Assembly: GCA_965112155.1 (NCBI GenBank)
Contig: OZ218102.1
DNA length: 64,000 nt
Origin: Podarcis liolepis
Lineage: Eukaryota
Strand: one strand, 5' to 3'
In this document: positions 17,280 through 61,017 of the stretch, piece after piece
How the letters are laid out: each line of letters opens with the position of its first letter
Numbering within the stretch: the first letter of the stretch is position 1
Translations under genes and position numbers: made by a program
The notes under the pieces: generated by a model
What the model saw: the letters and a program-made list of their open reading frames with translations, nothing else
Told to the model about the DNA's origin: nothing
Database searches by the model: none

Positions 17280-17712
17280 TGTCAGGGAACTGACATCGGA
17301 ACGAGAGGCGAAGGGGAGGCTCCCAGATGATGCTGGCGAAGGACCCAGCAGCAGGGGGAGAAACAGCTCAGTAGAGGGGGAAGCCAATCAGCGCAACACC
17401 AGGGATAAAGGGGGACAGATGGGGGAATTGGAAAGAGGGCTCCAGGACTCTTCACTGGACATCAGTGAGGAGAGCCCAGGTCCTCCGCTACCCACGCCTT
17501 CCCTGAGCAGAAGACTCCCGCGCAGTGAGAGGAGGAGACTGGGTGTCAAACAACTTTTATGTTGGAAGAGGTTCAAGAAACACCCACTGACGGATTCTGC
17601 CAGTGACTGAGGCAGCCACGATGAGAAGGGGCTGTGCAGTCAGAAAGGTTTAACAAGGCAAATTAACCGAGAAAGGCACCAGTTTACGCACGAGTAACTC
17701 ATACCTATTACA
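17280..17712 (+). mobile_element. Solo LTR, 433 bp
   Basis: TGT...ACA termini; 5-bp TSD GACCT at 17275-17279 and 17713-17717; inserted into the head of a CORE-SINE. Confidence 0.85.
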
Positions 17713-42840: not shown

Positions 42841-43382
42841 GGTAATATAGTATATACCGGTAGTTCAGATACTGATGCAAAGCAGTACATGCTGTTATGG
42901 TCCGTGCTGCCCCCTTATGTTCATTACACCCATGCCCACTTTGAGCATCTTGAAAGGGTTGACATGTGTATATCTCAAGCATAAATTGAAATCACCTGCT
43001 TAATACTGGTTGTGAAGCCAACCCTAAGATTAAAGCTTTATAGCACTTTTGGAAAGCATGGCATCAGCATTGTTGGCAGGCATGCACTTAGGTAGCTGTC
43101 TGTAGTGCCATGCCACGTTGACAGGGCAACTGGCATGCCTGGACATTTCATGGGAAATCTAAAAAAGCAGAAGGGTGGCAAAGTCCACCATGCTCAGTTT
43201 CTGCCCAGCAAACCTTCATCTGTTTCATCCATGGCTACCTTCCTTACAGAACCGATAATTCTGCATGGTTTGGTTGAACCCATCTCATGTTACCTGGTAT
43301 GTGCCTTACAAATTCCTCCGAAACAAGGTGGGCGTTCACATACTTTCTTCTTTTATTTAGACACACACACAAACACTGTGTG

Positions 43383-43733
43383 ATGGCCTGGGATTCCGAT
43401 TCGGAGGATGAAACAGAGGAATCCCAGCCTGCACAAGAGTCCCCGCCTCCAGGGCCGGCTGAACTGGGGCAAGGCCTAGATGCTGAAGAACCTGCACCTG
43501 TGGCAGTGCATCAGGAGCTGGCCCCAGGTGAAACCCTTCTGGCCCCAGAGAGGCTTGACGACTCAGTGGCCACAGGTGAGCCTCCTCCAGGGCCCAGTAA
43601 CCCTTCGGCCTCTCCTGATCTGCAGAGGCTTAGGGCAGAGAGGCGAAGGGAACTGGTTGCCCCCAGGAGGAGTGCTCGCCTTAAGGCCAGAGGAGGCGGG
43701 GCTCCTGGGGGCCGGGACCGCCCCTGGCCTTAG
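43383..43733 (+). CDS. U3-encoded 116-aa acidic/Pro-rich then basic ORF; same sequence as the Pol C-terminal tail except one residue
   Basis: MAWDSDSEDETEE...PRRSARLKARGG...RPWP*; ATG in GTGATGG context; independent translation unproven. Confidence 0.4.
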   Translation: MAWDSDSEDETEESQPAQESPPPGPAELGQGLDAEEPAPVAVHQELAPGETLLAPERLDDSVATGEPPPGPSNPSASPDLQRLRAERRRELVAPRRSARLKARGGGAPGGRDRPWP

Positions 43734-43738
43734 AAGAG

Positions 43739-43780
43739 GACAAAAGCCCAGTCAGCCCGGCCCCAGGTTGCGGGAGCAAC
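43739..43780 (+). promoter_or_regulatory. Putative TATA-like box (GACAAAAG) and transcript 5' end/self-primer GCGGGAGCAA
   Basis: Related solo LTR at 60401 has GATAAAAG...GTGGGAGCAAC with similar spacing; GC-box-like elements upstream. Confidence 0.55.
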
Positions 43781-44002
43781 GTCATTGTTGGCTTCGGACC
43801 TCCCTGTGTTCCTGATTCCTGCTCGGCCTCCTGTTCCTGACTATCCGGTACTCCTGTTCCCGACCATCCGGTGTTCCTGTTCCCTGCACAGCCTCCTGTT
43901 CCAGCGTACCTGTTCCCCGCCCGGCTCTCTGCCTCGGACATTGCCCCTCTTCGTGTGGACTCTACTACGCCCAAGGTACCTTACCCCCGGGACCAGCACA
44001 GT

Positions 44003-44012
44003 TTGCTCCCGC
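44003..44012 (+). promoter_or_regulatory. Primer-binding site, self-priming type
   Basis: TTGCTCCCGC, 2 nt after the LTR end, is the exact reverse complement of LTR 43770-43779; no TGG tRNA-type PBS. Confidence 0.75.
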
Positions 44013-44063
44013 CACACCCGCACTCCCCCTTCATAGGGGTGCGTTCGGGAAGAGCCAGAGGCC

Positions 44064-44960
44064 ATGGCTGAACAGGCGGCTACACTGGTGGCTTTGGCCC
44101 AGGAGAACCAGGCCTTGACTCACACCGTGCAGCAGCTCAGCGACGCGGTTGTGGCACTTCAGCAACGCTTGGAAGCCCTACCGGCTCCTGGGGCCGACGC
44201 CCCGGCTCCGGGCAAGTACCCAGTGGCTTTGCCTGAGAAATTTGATGGAGCCCCGGCCAGCTTTCCCATGTTCCTGGCCCAGGCCAAGCTGTATATTCAG
44301 GGGCGAGCCCGGAACTTTCCTGACGACCGCACCAAGGTGCACTTTTTGATTAGTTTGTTAAAGGACCAGGCGGCCAAGTGGGCGTTGCCGCTACTCAGGC
44401 AAGACTCCCCCTTGCTGGCAGACTATACGGGGTTTTGCAATCATTTGGAGGCCGCGTTCGGCAACCCCCAGAAAGAGAGTCAAGCCAACCGGGCGATTCG
44501 GCGTTTGAAACAGGGCAAGTCCACGGTGGCCACATATACCACGGAGTTTCGGCTGTTGGCACACGACTTGACCTGGAATGACTCGGCACTGCGGGACCAG
44601 TATCTCGAAGGGCTTTCGGACGAGGTACTGGACCAGTTGGCCACAATGGAACGCCCCACCACGCTGGACACTCTCATTCAACGGAGTCTACAAATAGACG
44701 ACCGGTTGGAGGATCGTCGTCAGGCCCGGGGTCGCCGACACTCCCAGTTCACGGCACCAGCTTTTTCCGGCAGCCCCACGGTCACAACTGATTTAACGGA
44801 GGAGCCTATGCAGCTCGGGGCAGTGCGGCCACGCCTTTCCCCCGCAGAGAAGGCGCGGCGTCGGGAGGGAAATCTCTGTCTTTACTGTGGCGGAAGTGGA
44901 CACTTCGCTCGGTCCTGCCCTGAGAAACGCCAGCCGCAGGGAAACCGCCAACCCCAGTAG
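44064..44960 (+). CDS. gag: Gag (PEG10/RTL-like capsid and CCHC nucleocapsid), 298 aa
   Basis: N-terminal coiled coil, LPEKFDG, EEPMQLG, zinc knuckle CLYCGGSGHFARSC. Confidence 0.93.
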   Translation: MAEQAATLVALAQENQALTHTVQQLSDAVVALQQRLEALPAPGADAPAPGKYPVALPEKFDGAPASFPMFLAQAKLYIQGRARNFPDDRTKVHFLISLLKDQAAKWALPLLRQDSPLLADYTGFCNHLEAAFGNPQKESQANRAIRRLKQGKSTVATYTTEFRLLAHDLTWNDSALRDQYLEGLSDEVLDQLATMERPTTLDTLIQRSLQIDDRLEDRRQARGRRHSQFTAPAFSGSPTVTTDLTEEPMQLGAVRPRLSPAEKARRREGNLCLYCGGSGHFARSCPEKRQPQGNRQPQ

Positions 44961-45006
44961 CTGATGGCCCTAGCTACCGGGGGTCCCAAACCGTACAGAA
45001 TGGGCC
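44939..45006 (+). promoter_or_regulatory. -1 programmed ribosomal frameshift signal (G GGA AAC plus H-type pseudoknot)
   Basis: Heptamer 44939-44945 is in gag phase and the -1 frame is open into pol; stem 1 ACCCCAGTAGCT/AGCTACCGGGGGT; stem 2 GGCCC (44966-44970)/GGGCC (45002-45006). Confidence 0.8.
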
Positions 45007-48000
45007 CGCACCAATGGACTTGCAACATCTTATGGTTTCGGTACGTTTATACCCTCCAGGGGGGCCCTGGATCCTCACCCATGCTTTGGTAGATTCAGGG
45101 GCGACCCGCTCCTATATGGACGCTGCTTTTGCCACCCGTCATCAGGTGCCACTTCGGAACAAGCCAGTACCGATCCAGGTGGAAGCGATTGACGGACGAC
45201 TTCTGCGTTCAGGTGCTGTTACTCAGGAGACCCAGCCCCTGGTCCTGTGTCTCCAGCAGCACCGGGAGTTGCGAACTTTGGACATTGCTTCTATGCCCCG
45301 CTTCCCCCTGGTGCTCGGGATGGACTGGCTGGAAGCCCACAACGTTCAGATTGACTGGGTCAAACGGACCGTGCACTTCCCAGACCCATGTTCCCATGCT
45401 CAATCCGGAACGCTGGCGGCCGCGCCCTCAGAGGAGGCAGCACCCACGCTCCCAGCCGTGTACCAGGACTACCAGGACGTGTTCGAGGAACGGGGGGCAG
45501 ACCAGCTGCCGCCGCATCGGCCTTTTGACTGCGGCATAGACCTCCAACCCGGAGCGCCTTTACCAGTGAGTCGCTTATATTCCCTAACAGAGCCAGAGCG
45601 CGAGGCTTTGCAGGACTTCTTGCGCAAGAACCTGGAGCGTGGGTTCATTAGGCCTTCCACCTCGCCTACCGCGGCACCAGTGCTTTTCGTTAAGAAGAAA
45701 TGTGGGGAACTCCGCCCTTGCCATGATTACCGAGCCCTGAACAAAATTACCGTCCCAGACCGGTACCCCTTACCCCTTATCTCGGAGCTGCTGGAGCGGG
45801 TGCAAGGGGCACAGGTGTTCACCAAGCTGGACCTCCGAGGGGCCTACAACTTGATTCGGATCCGAGCCGGGGATGAGTGGAAGACAGCGTTTGGGACCCG
45901 GTACGGGCAGTTCGAATATTTGGTTATGCCTTTCGGTTTGTGCAACGCGCCTGCTGTGTTCCAACGCTACATCAACCACGTGTTTCAGGACTTGTTAGAC
46001 AAGTACGTGGTGGTGTATTTGGATGACATACTGATTTACTCCCGTGACCCGGCTCACCATGAGGGACATGTCCGGACCGTGCTGCAGCGCTTGCGTGAGC
46101 ACCGTTTGTACGCAAAGCTCATCAAGTGCGAGTTCCATCAGCGGACTGTGGACTTCCTTGGTCACCGGCTCTCTCCAGATGGGGTGCAAATGGACCCGGG
46201 GAAGGTGACAGCGGTTCGAGAATGGGCGGCACCCCGGAACCGCAAGGACCTACAGCGTTTCCTGGGGTTCGCCAATTACTACCGGACCTTCATCGCTGAT
46301 TATGCTCATCGCACCACCCCGTTGACCCGGCTACTGCGCCCAAAGACGCCGTTTTCCTGGGACAAGGAGGCAGAGGAGGCGTTTCAGGGGTTGAAGGCCT
46401 GTTTCCAGAGGGCACCAATCTTACAACATCCTGACCCCTCTCGACCTTTTGTGGTGGAGACCGACGCCTCCAGTACGGCTCTCGGTGCCGTCTTGTCTCA
46501 ACAGATTGGGCCTGAAGCGCCACTCTTACCCTGTGCCTTCTATTCCCGCCAGCTCCTACCAGCGGAGCGTAACTATACTGTGTGGGAGCGGGAACTACTG
46601 GCCATCAAGGTAGCCTTTGAGGTCTGGCGCCACCATCTTGAGGGGGCACGACATCCGGTGGAGGTGAGAACCGACCACCGGAACCTGGAGTACCTCCAGA
46701 CCACCCGCAAGCTGAACCAAAGACAGATCCGGTGGGCGTTGTTCTTTTCCCGGTTCCAGTTCCGGATCCGCTACATCCCTAGCTCTCAGAATCAGAAGGC
46801 GGATGCCCTGTCCCGGAAACCTGAAGACAACGCAGACACGGTACAGCAAGCAGAACCCACCACGATCCTACCTCCGGCTGCATTCCTGGCCACCCAGGAG
46901 GCGCAGCCACTGCAGGTTCGGGTGCGGGAACAGCAGCGGGTCGACGCTTGGGCCCAGGATCGGCTCCGGGAGCTGGCTGAAGGGTCCAGCCCACAGTATC
47001 CGGGACTGGTCCTGCATCAGGGCCTTCTGCTGCATCACGGTCGTCTGTACATCCCGCCAGGGCCACTACGGCTGGAGGTTCTCCGGATGGCCCATGATGC
47101 CCCAGCAGCGGGGCACTTTGGACGGTATCGGACCACCCATCTGGTCAGTCGAGAGTTTTGGTGGCCCCGCCTGAAGGCTGACGTGGCTCGCTACGTTGCT
47201 GGTTGTGATGTCTGCCGGCGCGCCAAGGGACCTACCGGGCGACCCCCCGGCCTACTTCAGCCATTGCCAGTTCCACCGCGTCCTTGGCACACGGTTTCAT
47301 TGGACTTTATAGTGGACTTACCCTCGTCTCGTGGCTGTACCTGCCTTCTGGTTTTCTCCGACCATTTCACCAAGATGGTGCACTGCGCTCCCTGTCCATC
47401 TGTACCCACAGCCAAGGAAACTGCTCAGCTGTACCTTCAGCATGTCTTCCGCTTGCATGGCCTACCTGAGCGTGTGGTGTCCGACCGGGGCGTTCAGTTC
47501 ACATCCCGGTTCTGGCGAGCATTACACCAGACCCTCGGGACAGAGGTCTGCCTCTCGTCAGCCTACCACCCACAGACCGATGGCCAGACGGAACGGGCGA
47601 ACGCGGTGCTGGAGCAGTACCTCCGGTGTTACTGCAGTTACCAGCAGGATGACTGGGTCGACCACCTGGCATTGGCAGAGTTCGCCTATAACAACGCGGT
47701 GAATGCGTCCACCCAGCAGACCCCGTTCCAGGCCAGTTATGGTTATCATCCACGGCTGTTTCCAGAGGTGCTGCCGGCGTCCGCAGTCCCGGCGGTGACG
47801 GAGTGGCTTCAAGAGCTCCAGTCCCAGCAACAGCTTTTGGTGGAGCAACTGCACCAGGCCAAGGAAGCGTACAAAGCCCAGGCCGACCGCCACCGCCAGG
47901 TGGGGCCGGAACTTCGCGTTGGTGACCTGGTTTGGCTCTCCACTCGCCACCTCCACCCCTCTCGACCTTCGCGGAAGTTGGACGCCCGCTTCACCGGCCC

Positions 48001-48736
48001 GTTCCCTATCGTAGACCAAGTCTCTCCTGTGGCATTTCGTCTCCGGTTACCCGCAACACTGAAGGTTCACCCGGTCTTCCACAGGTCCCTTTTGAGTCCG
48101 GTGGCCCCACCCGACGAGTTCCACCCGAACCGTCCCCGACCGCAGCCAGTGTTGGTTCGGGGAGAGCCTGAGTACGAGGTGGAACGCATCCTGGACTCCC
48201 GATACCGCAGGGGAAAGCTGCAGTATCTCATTGACTGGAAGGGGTACGGACTGGAGGACCGTTCCTGGGAACCAGCGGCCAACATCCACGCACCTGCCTG
48301 CCTCCGAGAGTTCCATGCGACGTACCCCGGCAAGCCGGGTCCGGACCCTCGGTTGAGGGGGGGGCCTGGGAGGGGGGATGGTGTGATGGCCTGGGATTCC
48401 GATTCGGAGGATGAAACAGAGGAATCCCAGCCTGCACAAGAGTCCCCGCCTCCAGGGCCGGCTGAACTGGGGCAAGGCCTAGATGCTGAAGAACCTGCAC
48501 CTGTGGCAGTGCATCAGGAGCTGGCCCCAGGTGAAACCCTTCTGGCCCCAGAGAGGCTTGACGACTCAGTGGCCACAGGTGAGCCTCCTCCAGGGCCCAG
48601 TAACCCTTCGACCTCTCCTGATCTGCAGAGGCTTAGGGCAGAGAGGCGAAGGGAACTGGTTGCCCCCAGGAGGAGTGCTCGCCTTAAGGCCAGAGGAGGC
48701 GGGGCTCCTGGGGGCCGGGACCGCCCCTGGCCTTAG
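44939..48736 (+). CDS. pol: Pol: protease, RT, RNase H, integrase, chromodomain and LTR-encoded tail; expressed as Gag-Pol by frameshift (first ATG at 45014)
   Basis: ALVDSGA (DSG 45092-45100), YLDD (46016-46027), VETDAS, HHCC (HDAPAAGH..CDVC), SLDFI/SDRG/GQTER, GPF motif, chromodomain EYEVERILDSR..YLIDWKGY..SWEP; no stop codons. Confidence 0.95.
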   Translation, partial: GKPPTPVADGPSYRGSQTVQNGPAPMDLQHLMVSVRLYPPGGPWILTHALVDSGATRSYMDAAFATRHQVPLRNKPVPIQVEAIDGRLLRSGAVTQETQPLVLCLQQHRELRTLDIASMPRFPLVLGMDWLEAHNVQIDWVKRTVHFPDPCSHAQSGTLAAAPSEEAAPTLPAVYQDYQDVFEERGADQLPPHRPFDCGIDLQPGAPLPVSRLYSLTEPEREALQDFLRKNLERGFIRPSTSPTAAPVLFVKKKCGELRPCHDYRALNKITVPDRYPLPLISELLERVQGAQVFTKLDLRGAYNLIRIRAGDEWKTAFGTRYGQFEYLVMPFGLCNAPAVFQRYINHVFQDLLDKYVVVYLDDILIYSRDPAHHEGHVRTVLQRLREHRLYAKLIKCEFHQRTVDFLGHRLSPDGVQMDPGKVTAVREWAAPRNRKDLQRFLGFANYYRTFIADYAHRTTPLTRLLRPKTPFSWDKEAEEAFQGLKACFQRAPILQHPDPSRPFVVETDASSTALGAVLSQQIGPEAPLLPCAFYSRQLLPAERNYTVWERELLAIKVAFEVWRHHLEGARHPVEVRTDHRNLEYLQTTRKLNQRQIRWALFFSRFQFRIRYIPSSQNQKADALSRKPEDNADTVQQAEPTTILPPAAFLATQEAQPLQVRVREQQRVDAWAQDRLRELAEGSSPQYPGLVLHQGLLLHHGRLYIPPGPLRLEVLRMAHDAPAAGHFGRYRTTHLVSREFWWPRLKADVARYVAGCDVCRRAKGPTGRPPGLLQPLPVPPRPWHTVSLDFIVDLPSSRGCTCLLVFSDHFTKMVHCAPCPSVPTAKETAQLYLQHVFRLHGLPERVVSDRGVQFTSRFWRALHQTLGTEVCLSSAYHPQTDGQTERANAVLEQYLRCYCSYQQDDWVDHLALAEFAYNNAVNASTQQTPFQASYGYHPRLFPEVLPASAVPAVTEWLQELQSQQQLLVEQLHQAKEAYKAQADRHRQVGPELRVGDLVWLSTRHLHPSRPSRKLDARFTGPFPIVDQVSPVAFRLRLPATLKVHPVFHRSLLSPVAPPDEFHPNRPRPQPVLVRGEPEYEVERILDSRYRRGKLQYLIDWKGYGLEDRSWEPAANIHAPACLREFHATYPGKPGPDPRLRGGPGRGDGVMAWDSDSEDETEESQPAQESPPPGPAELGQGLDAEEPAPVAVHQELAPGETLLAPERLDDSVATGEPPPGPSNPSTSPDLQRLRAERRRELVAPRRSARLKARGGGAPGGRDRPWP
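48355..48381 (+). promoter_or_regulatory. Polypurine tract
   Basis: GAGGGGGGGGCCTGGGAGGGGGGATGG immediately before the 3' LTR. Confidence 0.8.
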
Positions 48737-49003
48737 AAGAGGACAAAAGCCCAGTCAGCCCGGCCCCAGGTTGCGGGAGCAACGTCGTTGTTGGCTTCGG
48801 ACCTCCCTGTGTTCCTGATTCCTGCTCGGCCTCCTGTTCCTGACTATCCGGTACTCCTGTTCCCGACCATCCGGTGTTCCTGTTCCCTGCACAGCCTCCT
48901 GTTCCAGCGTACCTGTTCCCCGCCCGGCTCTCTGCCTCGGACATTGCCCCTCTTCGTGTGGACTCTACTACGCCCAAGGTACCTTACCCCCGGGACCAGC
49001 ACA
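48382..49003 (+). repeat. 3' LTR
   Basis: Direct repeat of 43379-44000 (offset 5003); differences at 43608/48611 and 43784/48787. Confidence 0.95.
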
Positions 49004-49290
49004 CACTGCTTCTTCTCATCATATGTGTATGAGGCAGGCCTGGATAGCTATGGATTTTCTGAGATGAGCACAACCCGCTAGCCTACCAGAGGCTTGATGT
49101 AAACAGCCATTTTTTGCTTAAATTGAAAGGAACCAAAAATAAGAACTTTACTGACCTCCTTGCATGCCACAATACATTGCTGGTATACTGTGTTCACCAG
49201 CTTGGTGGATCACCAGTTATTAAGTCTTGTGTTTGGCATACTGGTTCTGGTAAAATAAAAATATATGAACTAAATTTCCCAACTACAACT

Positions 49291-60400: not shown

Positions 60401-61017
60401 TGTGCTGGGCCTGGGGGTAACCCATGCAACGCGGTCCAGGACCAGTCCAGAATCCAAAGGTTCCACTAGGAGACAGTCCGACAGGGCCAAGGCAGGACAC
60501 AAGGCAGGAAACCAGGCAAAGACAGGTACAGGATCTCAGGAAGGATCTAGCATACAGCAATGTTGCTCCCACAACCTGGGGCGGGGCCCAACAGCCTTTT
60601 ATCTTTGTCGGGGTAGTGGCCGGTCCTGATCCCCCGGTGACTCACCACCCTGTTTTGCCCGAAGGCGAGCACTCCTCCTGCGAGTACTCAGGTCTCTCCT
60701 TCTCTCTGCAGCTTGGGAGACGTCGGTGGGTTACTAGACCCAGGGGCTGCCTCAGCCTCCCCGACCAAACCGGTAGTGGAGCATCTGTAAGCGATGGCCC
60801 AGCTGAAGGCAATGAGGTAATCCCCGCATCTGGAGCCAGGGCAGGCTCAGGCCCCTGACTCAGCTCAGCTGGTGTTTGTTGCAGGGGAACCTGTGCAGAC
60901 TGGGACTCTTCAGGATCAAGCCCCAGACTTGGTTCAGGTGATGCCTGAGGCAAAGGATCTGGTGCAGACTGAGTCTCCTCTGGTTCCGAGTCCGAGCCCA
61001 AGTCCCAGGCCATCACA
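60401..61017 (-). mobile_element. Solo LTR (617 bp) related to the full-length element
   Basis: Minus strand TGTGATGGCCTGGGA...TTACCCCCAGGCCCAGCACA; TSD CTACT (60396-60400, 61018-61022). Confidence 0.92.

Follow-up and report, generated by a model that had tools for sequence, protein, structure and literature searches.

A chromovirus integrase of Podarcis that reads into the U3 of its own long terminal repeat, with a candidate HMGN-type acidic-patch anchor near its C-terminus

The 64,000-nucleotide stretch of Podarcis liolepis DNA analysed here (contig OZ218102.1 of assembly GCA_965112155.1, referred to as the window) contains, at positions 43379-49003 on the plus strand, a Ty3/gypsy chromovirus of the Tf1/sushi type that is young and appears unbroken. 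Its integrase extends beyond the chromodomain; translation runs on through the polypurine tract (PPT) and about 90% of U3, the unique 3' region that opens the long terminal repeat (LTR). The tail added in this way ends close to a short motif resembling the nucleosome-binding core of HMGN proteins. The element comprises the following features.

43374-43378 and 49004-49008 (no strand): target-site duplication CACTG, first and second copy, read at the LTR edges
43379-44000, plus strand: 5' LTR, 622 bp, TG..CA, from self-alignment of the LTR pair
43770-43779, plus strand (3' LTR counterpart 48773-48782): predicted first 10 nt of the transcript, acting as self-primer, GCGGGAGCAA
44003-44012, plus strand: primer-binding site (PBS) of the Tf1/sushi self-priming type, 2 nt past the 5' LTR
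44064-44960, plus strand: gag, 298 amino acids (DUF4939/PEG10-like, Retrotrans_gag, Ty3 capsid, CCHC knuckle), from Pfam
44939-44945, plus strand: G_GGA_AAC heptamer in the gag frame, its phase derived from the coordinates
45014-48736, plus strand: pol open reading frame (ORF), 1240 amino acids, with protease, reverse transcriptase (RT), RNase H, integrase (H2C2, core, SH3), chromodomain and LTR-encoded tail, from the ORF and Pfam
48173-48316, plus strand: chromodomain, amino acids 1054-1101 (PF00385, E 1.3e-14, 54 bits against a cut-off of 25)
About 48355-48381, plus strand: PPT within the coding frame, encoding RGGPGRGDG
48382-49003, plus strand: 3' LTR, 622 bp, TG..CA, with U3 at about 48382-48772 and the terminal repeat R from about 48773
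48383-48736, plus strand: LTR-encoded integrase tail, 117 codons (48383-48733) followed by TAG (48734-48736), about 90% of U3, from the ORF
48386-48430, plus strand: acidic N-terminal module of the tail, MAWDSDSEDETEESQ, kept in the Podarcis lineages A, B, D and C
48599-48658, plus strand: SNPSTSP and the basic stretch DLQRLRAERRREL, a pattern invariant in the four Podarcis lineages
48668-48694, plus strand: HMGN-like motif RRSARLKAR, candidate arginine anchor, with RRSARL at 48668-48685
48741-48750, plus strand: TATA-like box directly 3' of the stop codon, here GGACAAAAGC

The pol frame passes the chromodomain and the PPT, enters the LTR at 48382 and meets no stop before the TAG at 48734-48736. 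Every annotated Podarcis copy that reaches the region reads through to the identical stop, and the chromodomain and the LTR lie in one frame in all copies that include both. A sequence-only reading of the window had described this extension of 117 codons past the chromodomain and the PPT into the LTR, as well as a layout of an acidic and proline-rich part, SP, a basic stretch and PRRSARLKAR; all of these are seen where they had been placed, and the stop right after the chromodomain that the same reading considered for most intact copies is absent from the annotated Podarcis copies that reach the region. Along the tail, VMAWDSDSEDETEES is followed by a Pro/Glu-rich stretch, SNPSTSPDLQRLRAERRREL and VAPRRSARLKARGGG. 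Its opening is acidic (MAWDSDSEDETEES) and its middle Pro/Glu/Ala-rich, and SNPSTSP, DLQRLRAERRREL and VAPRRSARLKARGGG complete it. A single-sequence AlphaFold2 model of the SH3-chromodomain-tail fragment (mean confidence, pLDDT, of 40, and used for this one helix only) places the sole predicted helix of the tail in the DLQRLRAERRREL region, at residues 243-256 of the folded fragment; the flanks of RRSARLKAR are predicted, likewise with low confidence, to be non-helical. In a tail of equal composition, RRSARL is expected by chance about 1e-4 times. An origin of the motif as a by-product of the PPT was rejected, the motif lying 285 nt inside the LTR.

The remainder of the element follows its group in domain order (gag, protease, RT, RNase H, integrase), with every Pfam match above the curated cut-off and an integrase SH3 domain of the Tf2 type (SH3_Tf2-1). 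The pol frame is open from 44924, and the heptamer G_GGA_AAC at 44939-44945 sits within the 34-nt overlap of gag and pol, which suggests that it is the likely -1 frameshift site from gag to pol. By comparison with HP1, all three positions of the chromodomain's aromatic cage are present (Y in EYEVE, W and Y in DWKGY). Two chromodomain changes are private to the copy in the window, Leu for Pro (GYGLED versus GYGPED) and Ile for Val, at 48252 and 48284; the alternative base reaches nearly 100% at both positions in all three DNA sequencing runs. The two LTRs differ at 2 positions (43608 G versus 48611 A; 43784 A versus 48787 G), i.e. by 0.32%. With a squamate neutral rate which we take to be roughly 1e-9 per site per year, this corresponds to a rough insertion age of the order of a million years. 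The proteins nearest to pol are gene models of Podarcis muralis and P. lilfordi, and near-identical DNA is present in the sequencing runs of five organisms.

Openness of the tail frame is by itself weak evidence for coding. In 158 of 5000 dinucleotide shuffles of this GC-rich stretch (3.2%) a frame of 117 codons stayed open, and the neighbouring frames hold few stops; whether the tail codes was therefore decided from the pattern of substitutions. The partner for this comparison lies in the same window.

60401-61017, minus strand: diverged sister solo LTR (family C), flanked by the duplication CTACT, with RRSARL at 60662-60679

The sister LTR is 73% identical overall and shares the tail modules, which are broken by two frameshifts; intact family-C frames are found in the P. 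muralis models P0032 and P0034. Over the alignable modules, the nonsynonymous rate (dN) was 0.26 and the synonymous rate (dS) 1.25, giving a ratio of 0.21 (Fisher p 2e-8). This value rests on one sequence pair and, with a solo LTR in decay as one partner, is higher than the actual ratio of lineages that are active. The identical DNA read in the two wrong frames gave dN/dS values of 1.5 and 1.7. In a frame-blind DNA alignment, 58 of 124 differences in the tail fell at third codon positions (p 0.0013), compared with 27 of 88 at the equivalent phase in the rest of the LTR, which is non-coding. Variants common to at least 8% of copies in the three DNA runs show a similar count: among the best-supported ones, with 163 more across the stretch, 10 of 15 in the tail are at third positions (p 0.0085), and 9 of 16 in the integrase, which served as a control. 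Between subfamilies, insertions and deletions in the tail are in frame. At the protein level, the tail has thus been subject to purifying selection; for the U3 frame, for which the sequence-only reading had proposed a dN/dS calculation, the outcome is a ratio of about 0.2 together with third-position periodicity, and no value near one. DNA reads cover the acidic start and the basic end 10-15 times as deeply as the middle of the tail, so many more LTRs carry these two parts. The GC content at third codon positions (GC3) is 0.54 in the tail and 0.68 in pol.

The tail appears to lie wholly inside U3, because R, judged from the self-priming complement, starts near 48773, where we infer the U3/R border. 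The block at 43770-43779 is a perfect 10-nt complement of the PBS at 44003-44012 and is paired with it in both the minimum free energy and the centroid fold of the leader formed by R and U5; the GCGGGAGCAA block is located about 30 nt downstream of the TATA-like box. Self-priming has been described for the Tf1/Sushi group (PMC6317226). The element contains no tRNA-type PBS, the conserved LTR block complementary to the PBS being present instead. The TATA-like box is GATAAAGG in most genomic copies, with reads diverging from 48737, and GATAAAAG in the sister LTR. Just upstream of it, GC-box-like DNA extends over 48697-48727 (GGCGGGGC and CCGCCCC). This DNA encodes the last residues of the tail (GGAPGGRDRPWP), which are poorly conserved as protein, with only DRP (GACCGCCCC) kept; promoter constraint may show through here, as a trace of the joint demands of promoter and coding sequence. 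With the tail inside U3, the TATA-like box after the stop and R placed by the self-priming complement, the earlier proposal that U3 is promoter and coding sequence at once agrees with the layout found.

Across four Podarcis lineages, the pattern PG.SNP..SP.LQRLR.ERRR.L...RRSARL.A..GG is invariant. Searches with the tail as the only query found little beyond the genus: phmmer against 1.84 billion representative proteins returned eight matches with no HMGN among them, and phmmer and a word-indexed search together gave only Podarcis LTR-derived proteins and two low-complexity matches. A search of the ESM Atlas gave no match, nor did exact-pattern scans of metagenome and viral contigs with the motif DNA. 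The tails of Anolis carolinensis chromoviruses, which the tail-only queries did not recover, were found via an integrase query. These elements (clusters of 94 and 366 members) are 61-62% identical over the SH3-chromodomain region, and their tails of 105-117 residues share the GD[GS]VM junction at the start and close with RRSARIAAK or RRSARIAAR, after which four or five residues remain. Fifteen of the Anolis tails, drawn from four length classes, comprised ten with RRSARIAA[KR], four with RRSLR and one with RSSAR. Thus the motif takes the form RRSARL[KQR]A[KR] in Podarcis and RRS[AL]RIAA[KR] in Anolis. Apart from a few scattered columns, among them an acidic spot (D.EE) and the VM of the LTR junction, the tails of the two genera are otherwise unalignable. 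In 120 related pol proteins, RRS[AS]R occurred four times in 3,393 tail residues and not once in 137,342 non-tail residues, and the median tail after the chromodomain was about 13 residues long (121 relatives). The motif is kept in the diverged sister family and in Anolis elements, and the remainder of the tail is not.

All Anolis tails (P0035, P0036 and 13 other models) also keep an acidic block, D-E-E-E-N-[LM]-G-F. Short post-chromodomain tails with P-R-T-R-R-S-A-R-Q or P-R-P-R-R-S-S-A-R were seen in the metagenome-derived chromovirus pols P0109, P0184 and P0116, and may be independent RRSAR-like ends outside squamates; within this metagenome-derived cluster such an end is not constant, P0180 having RRSRR. 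A further LTR in the window belongs to a second chromovirus family.

17281-17607, plus strand: solo LTR of a second chromovirus family, with a 109-codon frame that corresponds to an LTR-encoded pol tail and has no RRSAR

This frame matches the last 115 amino acids of the P. muralis pol model P0133 end to end (BLASTP E 4e-12), by which criterion a second Podarcis family also reads from pol into its LTR. BLASTP between the 117-codon tail and the frame at 17281 found no significant similarity, and the tail of the second family ends in a different conserved basic block (LLCWKRF...). P0133 contains EELEGF and SFRGF which, like the acidic block of Anolis, resemble acidic FxGF motifs. The LTR-encoded tails may differ in their tether motif from one family to another.

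The forms RRSARLKA, RRSARLQA and RRSARIAA agree with the HMGN consensus RRSARLSA at seven of eight positions, and are thus nearer to it than the motif of Dsup or Dot5, the validated non-HMGN cases. R-R-S-A-R, i.e. arginines 1, 2 and 5 with serine 3, is invariant in Podarcis and dominant in Anolis. Structures from cryo-electron microscopy (cryo-EM) place residues 22-26 of human HMGN2 (RRSAR) and the RRSSR segment of tardigrade Dsup on the acidic patch of H2A-H2B; the second arginine touches H2A E56 and H2B E113, the arginine at the fifth position is the canonical anchor in the pocket of H2A E61, D90 and E92, and the serine bonds E61 or E64, its phosphorylation being predicted to repel binding (PMC12487698). 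AlphaFold 3 models of HMGN2 on the nucleosome were poor in the same study (PMC12487698). RRSARIAT of yeast Dot5 binds nucleosomes via R6, R7 and R10, and arginine-to-alanine exchange abolishes binding (10.64898/2026.01.14.699602). The two studies bear out what the sequence-only reading had stated, namely that RRSAR is a known acidic-patch anchor.

Based on these data, we propose that the tail would be a mostly disordered acidic and proline-rich linker ending in a basic module, in which RRSAR[L/I]xA[K/R] would act as in HMGN, Dsup and Dot5, with arginines 1, 2 and 5 inserted into the H2A-H2B acidic patch. The chromodomain with its intact aromatic cage presumably reads a methylated H3 tail, so that chromodomain and tail would make two contacts on one nucleosome and keep the intasome attached to chromatin or to the target nucleosome, while the same U3 DNA would serve as promoter, the TATA-like box starting right after the stop. 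That the selected LTR-encoded tail is a linker delivering an arginine anchor beside the chromodomain, with two contacts per nucleosome, appears to us somewhat better than an even proposition. The wider statement has about an even chance of being correct: a squamate lineage at least as old as the split of the Podarcis and Anolis elements would have put an HMGN-type anchor on its integrase, overprinted on the U3 promoter, and this would be the first retrotransposon integrase to dock directly on the acidic patch, beside its chromodomain.

Several observations weigh against this proposal. The tail had no Pfam match at E 0.01, HMG14_17 included, its basic end had none in a sequence search of the Protein Data Bank, and similarity to HMGN is confined to 8-9 residues; as far as these comparisons go, RRSAR is a shared motif and not a sign of HMGN homology. 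Some Anolis copies have RRSLR or RSSAR, and that the Anolis tails are LTR-encoded we infer from the shared GD[GS]VM junction, seen in proteins. The single sequence pair behind the dN/dS value, one partner being decayed, belongs here too. Families A and C do not differ at any synonymous site of the six RRSARL codons, although the proportion of synonymous differences elsewhere is about 0.6 (p about 0.014), and some of the constraint on these codons may act at the DNA level, e.g. on a U3 cis-element. In the RNA run, sense reads covered the integrase at a depth of 1-5 and the LTR at low depth, with no clear transcript start or end. Finally, the tail has two arginine clusters about ten residues apart, and a C-terminus so rich in arginine might just as well act as a nuclear localisation signal (NLS).

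The last point leads to the alternative that survives best, although we regard it as unlikely: the tail would be selected, but its basic end (RLRAERRREL...RRSARLKAR) would be an NLS or a nucleic-acid-binding patch, its resemblance to HMGN being coincidental. Ty1 integrase of yeast has a bipartite NLS at its C-terminus, and in the second Podarcis family the basic end is a different one without RRSAR, so that a basic C-terminus may be a general need. However, an NLS tolerates exchange of K and R and requires neither Ser nor Ala, whereas here R-R-S-A-R is fixed and the flanking basic residues swap between K, R and Q. Moreover, the upstream cluster RLRAERRR has been lost between Podarcis and Anolis, and only RRSAR[LI]xA[KR] survives.

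Docking of RRSAR[LI]xA[KR] on another acidic host surface or host factor instead of the acidic patch of the nucleosome is improbable. Short arginine motifs are promiscuous, and other integrase tails bind specific host proteins, as in the pairs Ty5-Sir4, MLV-BET (murine leukaemia virus) and Ty1-AC40; yet all three tested proteins with the motif bind the acidic patch through it.

Slightly less credible again is a separate small protein, made from the ATG at LTR bases 5-7 (MAWD...) via spliced or read-through transcripts in the manner of retroviral U3 accessory genes, and unfused to integrase. The 5' LTR carries this frame too, as 116 codons from the ATG (43383-43733), the ATG is kept in all families, and the gene models P0002, P0026, P0027, P0028, P0032 and P0034 start at the MAWD of the LTR and splice onward. 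The ATG is, however, explained by the attachment site, TGTGATG being the terminal repeat of the LTR, and CRM LTRs also start with TGATG; in the 5' LTR, transcription is predicted to start only downstream of the frame, the chromodomain and the LTR share one frame wherever both are present, and the MAWD-start models are automatic predictions. Some of these models are spliced to gag or to unrelated exons of the host, among them a G-protein-coupled-receptor-like gene in P. lilfordi, and in family C a GGTGAGT donor directly follows the motif; the models may be exonised LTRs or annotation artefacts.

The idea that the conserved blocks are cis-regulatory U3 DNA (enhancer or promoter), with the open frame a GC-rich by-product and the tail devoid of its own function, ranks just below. 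It would account for a frame that also opens in 3.2% of shuffles next to other frames that are nearly open, for RRSARL codons identical as DNA between families A and C, for a tail GC3 unlike that of pol, and for the two conserved modules being repeated more often than any other segment of the DNA. It is at odds with substitutions that show the period of the frame, with a dN/dS of 0.21 as against more than one in the other frames, with indels that are in frame, and with the peptide-like conservation in Anolis, where the motif allows L/I, K/R and any residue at x and keeps one place close to the C-terminus of tails that otherwise cannot be aligned. Least credible of all is common ancestry of the vertebrate-specific HMGN motif and the retroelement motif by capture in either direction, convergence being more likely because the similarity to HMGN ends at the motif.

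The way in which LTR retroelements and retroviruses select their chromatin targets and stay on them is usually ascribed to host adaptors (LEDGF, BET, Sir4, TFIIIB) or to chromodomains. If the proposed anchor on the integrase is real, it would represent a third, adaptor-free route and the counterpart of the tethers of LANA and of foamy virus Gag, and a mobile-element member would join the HMGN-like motif proteins anticipated by the cryo-EM study of 2025. The element also provides a vertebrate U3 that is about 90% coding, in which promoter and protein evolve under joint constraint. In a full-text search of a limited literature collection, no paper connected a retrotransposon integrase with an HMGN-like motif or with an acidic-patch anchor.

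An LTR-encoded integrase tail as such is already known, and it is the content of the tail that is new. In plant CRM elements of group A and in Bingo of the Reina clade, the gag-pol frame crosses the PPT and ends in the 3' LTR, which encodes a putative integrase targeting domain (PMC3059260, PMC3605345), as the sequence-only reading had correctly stated for CRM. The Podarcis element is like CRM and Bingo in the course of this frame and in LTR termini of the TGATG type. In CRM, however, the LTR-encoded CR motif replaces the chromodomain, whereas the Podarcis element keeps a complete chromodomain upstream of the PPT and adds a tail, which shows no reported similarity to the CR motif (by description, no formal comparison having been made) and belongs to an element of a vertebrate host.

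With the Tf1/sushi group (Tf1, sushi-ichi and vertebrate relatives, the ancestors of PEG10/RTL among them), the element shares the domain order, SH3_Tf2-1 and a chromodomain after the integrase core, a PEG10-like gag and the self-priming PBS. The relatives sampled mostly have about 13 residues after the chromodomain, to which the squamate lineages add about 100 that are encoded by the LTR.

The lizard motif shares with HMGN, Dsup and Dot5 the core R-R-S-A-R-[L/I]-x-A, followed by K/R as in HMGN (RRSARLSAK), and a location in a disordered region; it differs from HMGN, Dsup (RRSSRLTS) and Dot5 (RRSARIAT) in that homology does not extend beyond the motif, and in its position at the C-terminus of a retroelement polyprotein. 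The chromatin-binding sequence of prototype foamy virus Gag is an acidic-patch tether. Residues 1-22 of LANA of Kaposi's sarcoma-associated herpesvirus are referred to as an acidic-patch binder in the Dot5 study (10.64898/2026.01.14.699602). Like these two, the Podarcis motif would be a short arginine-anchor peptide on a viral or mobile protein that needs host chromatin; unlike the RLRS hairpin of LANA, a latency protein, and the single arginine of foamy virus Gag, the Podarcis peptide is carried by an integrase, beside a chromodomain.

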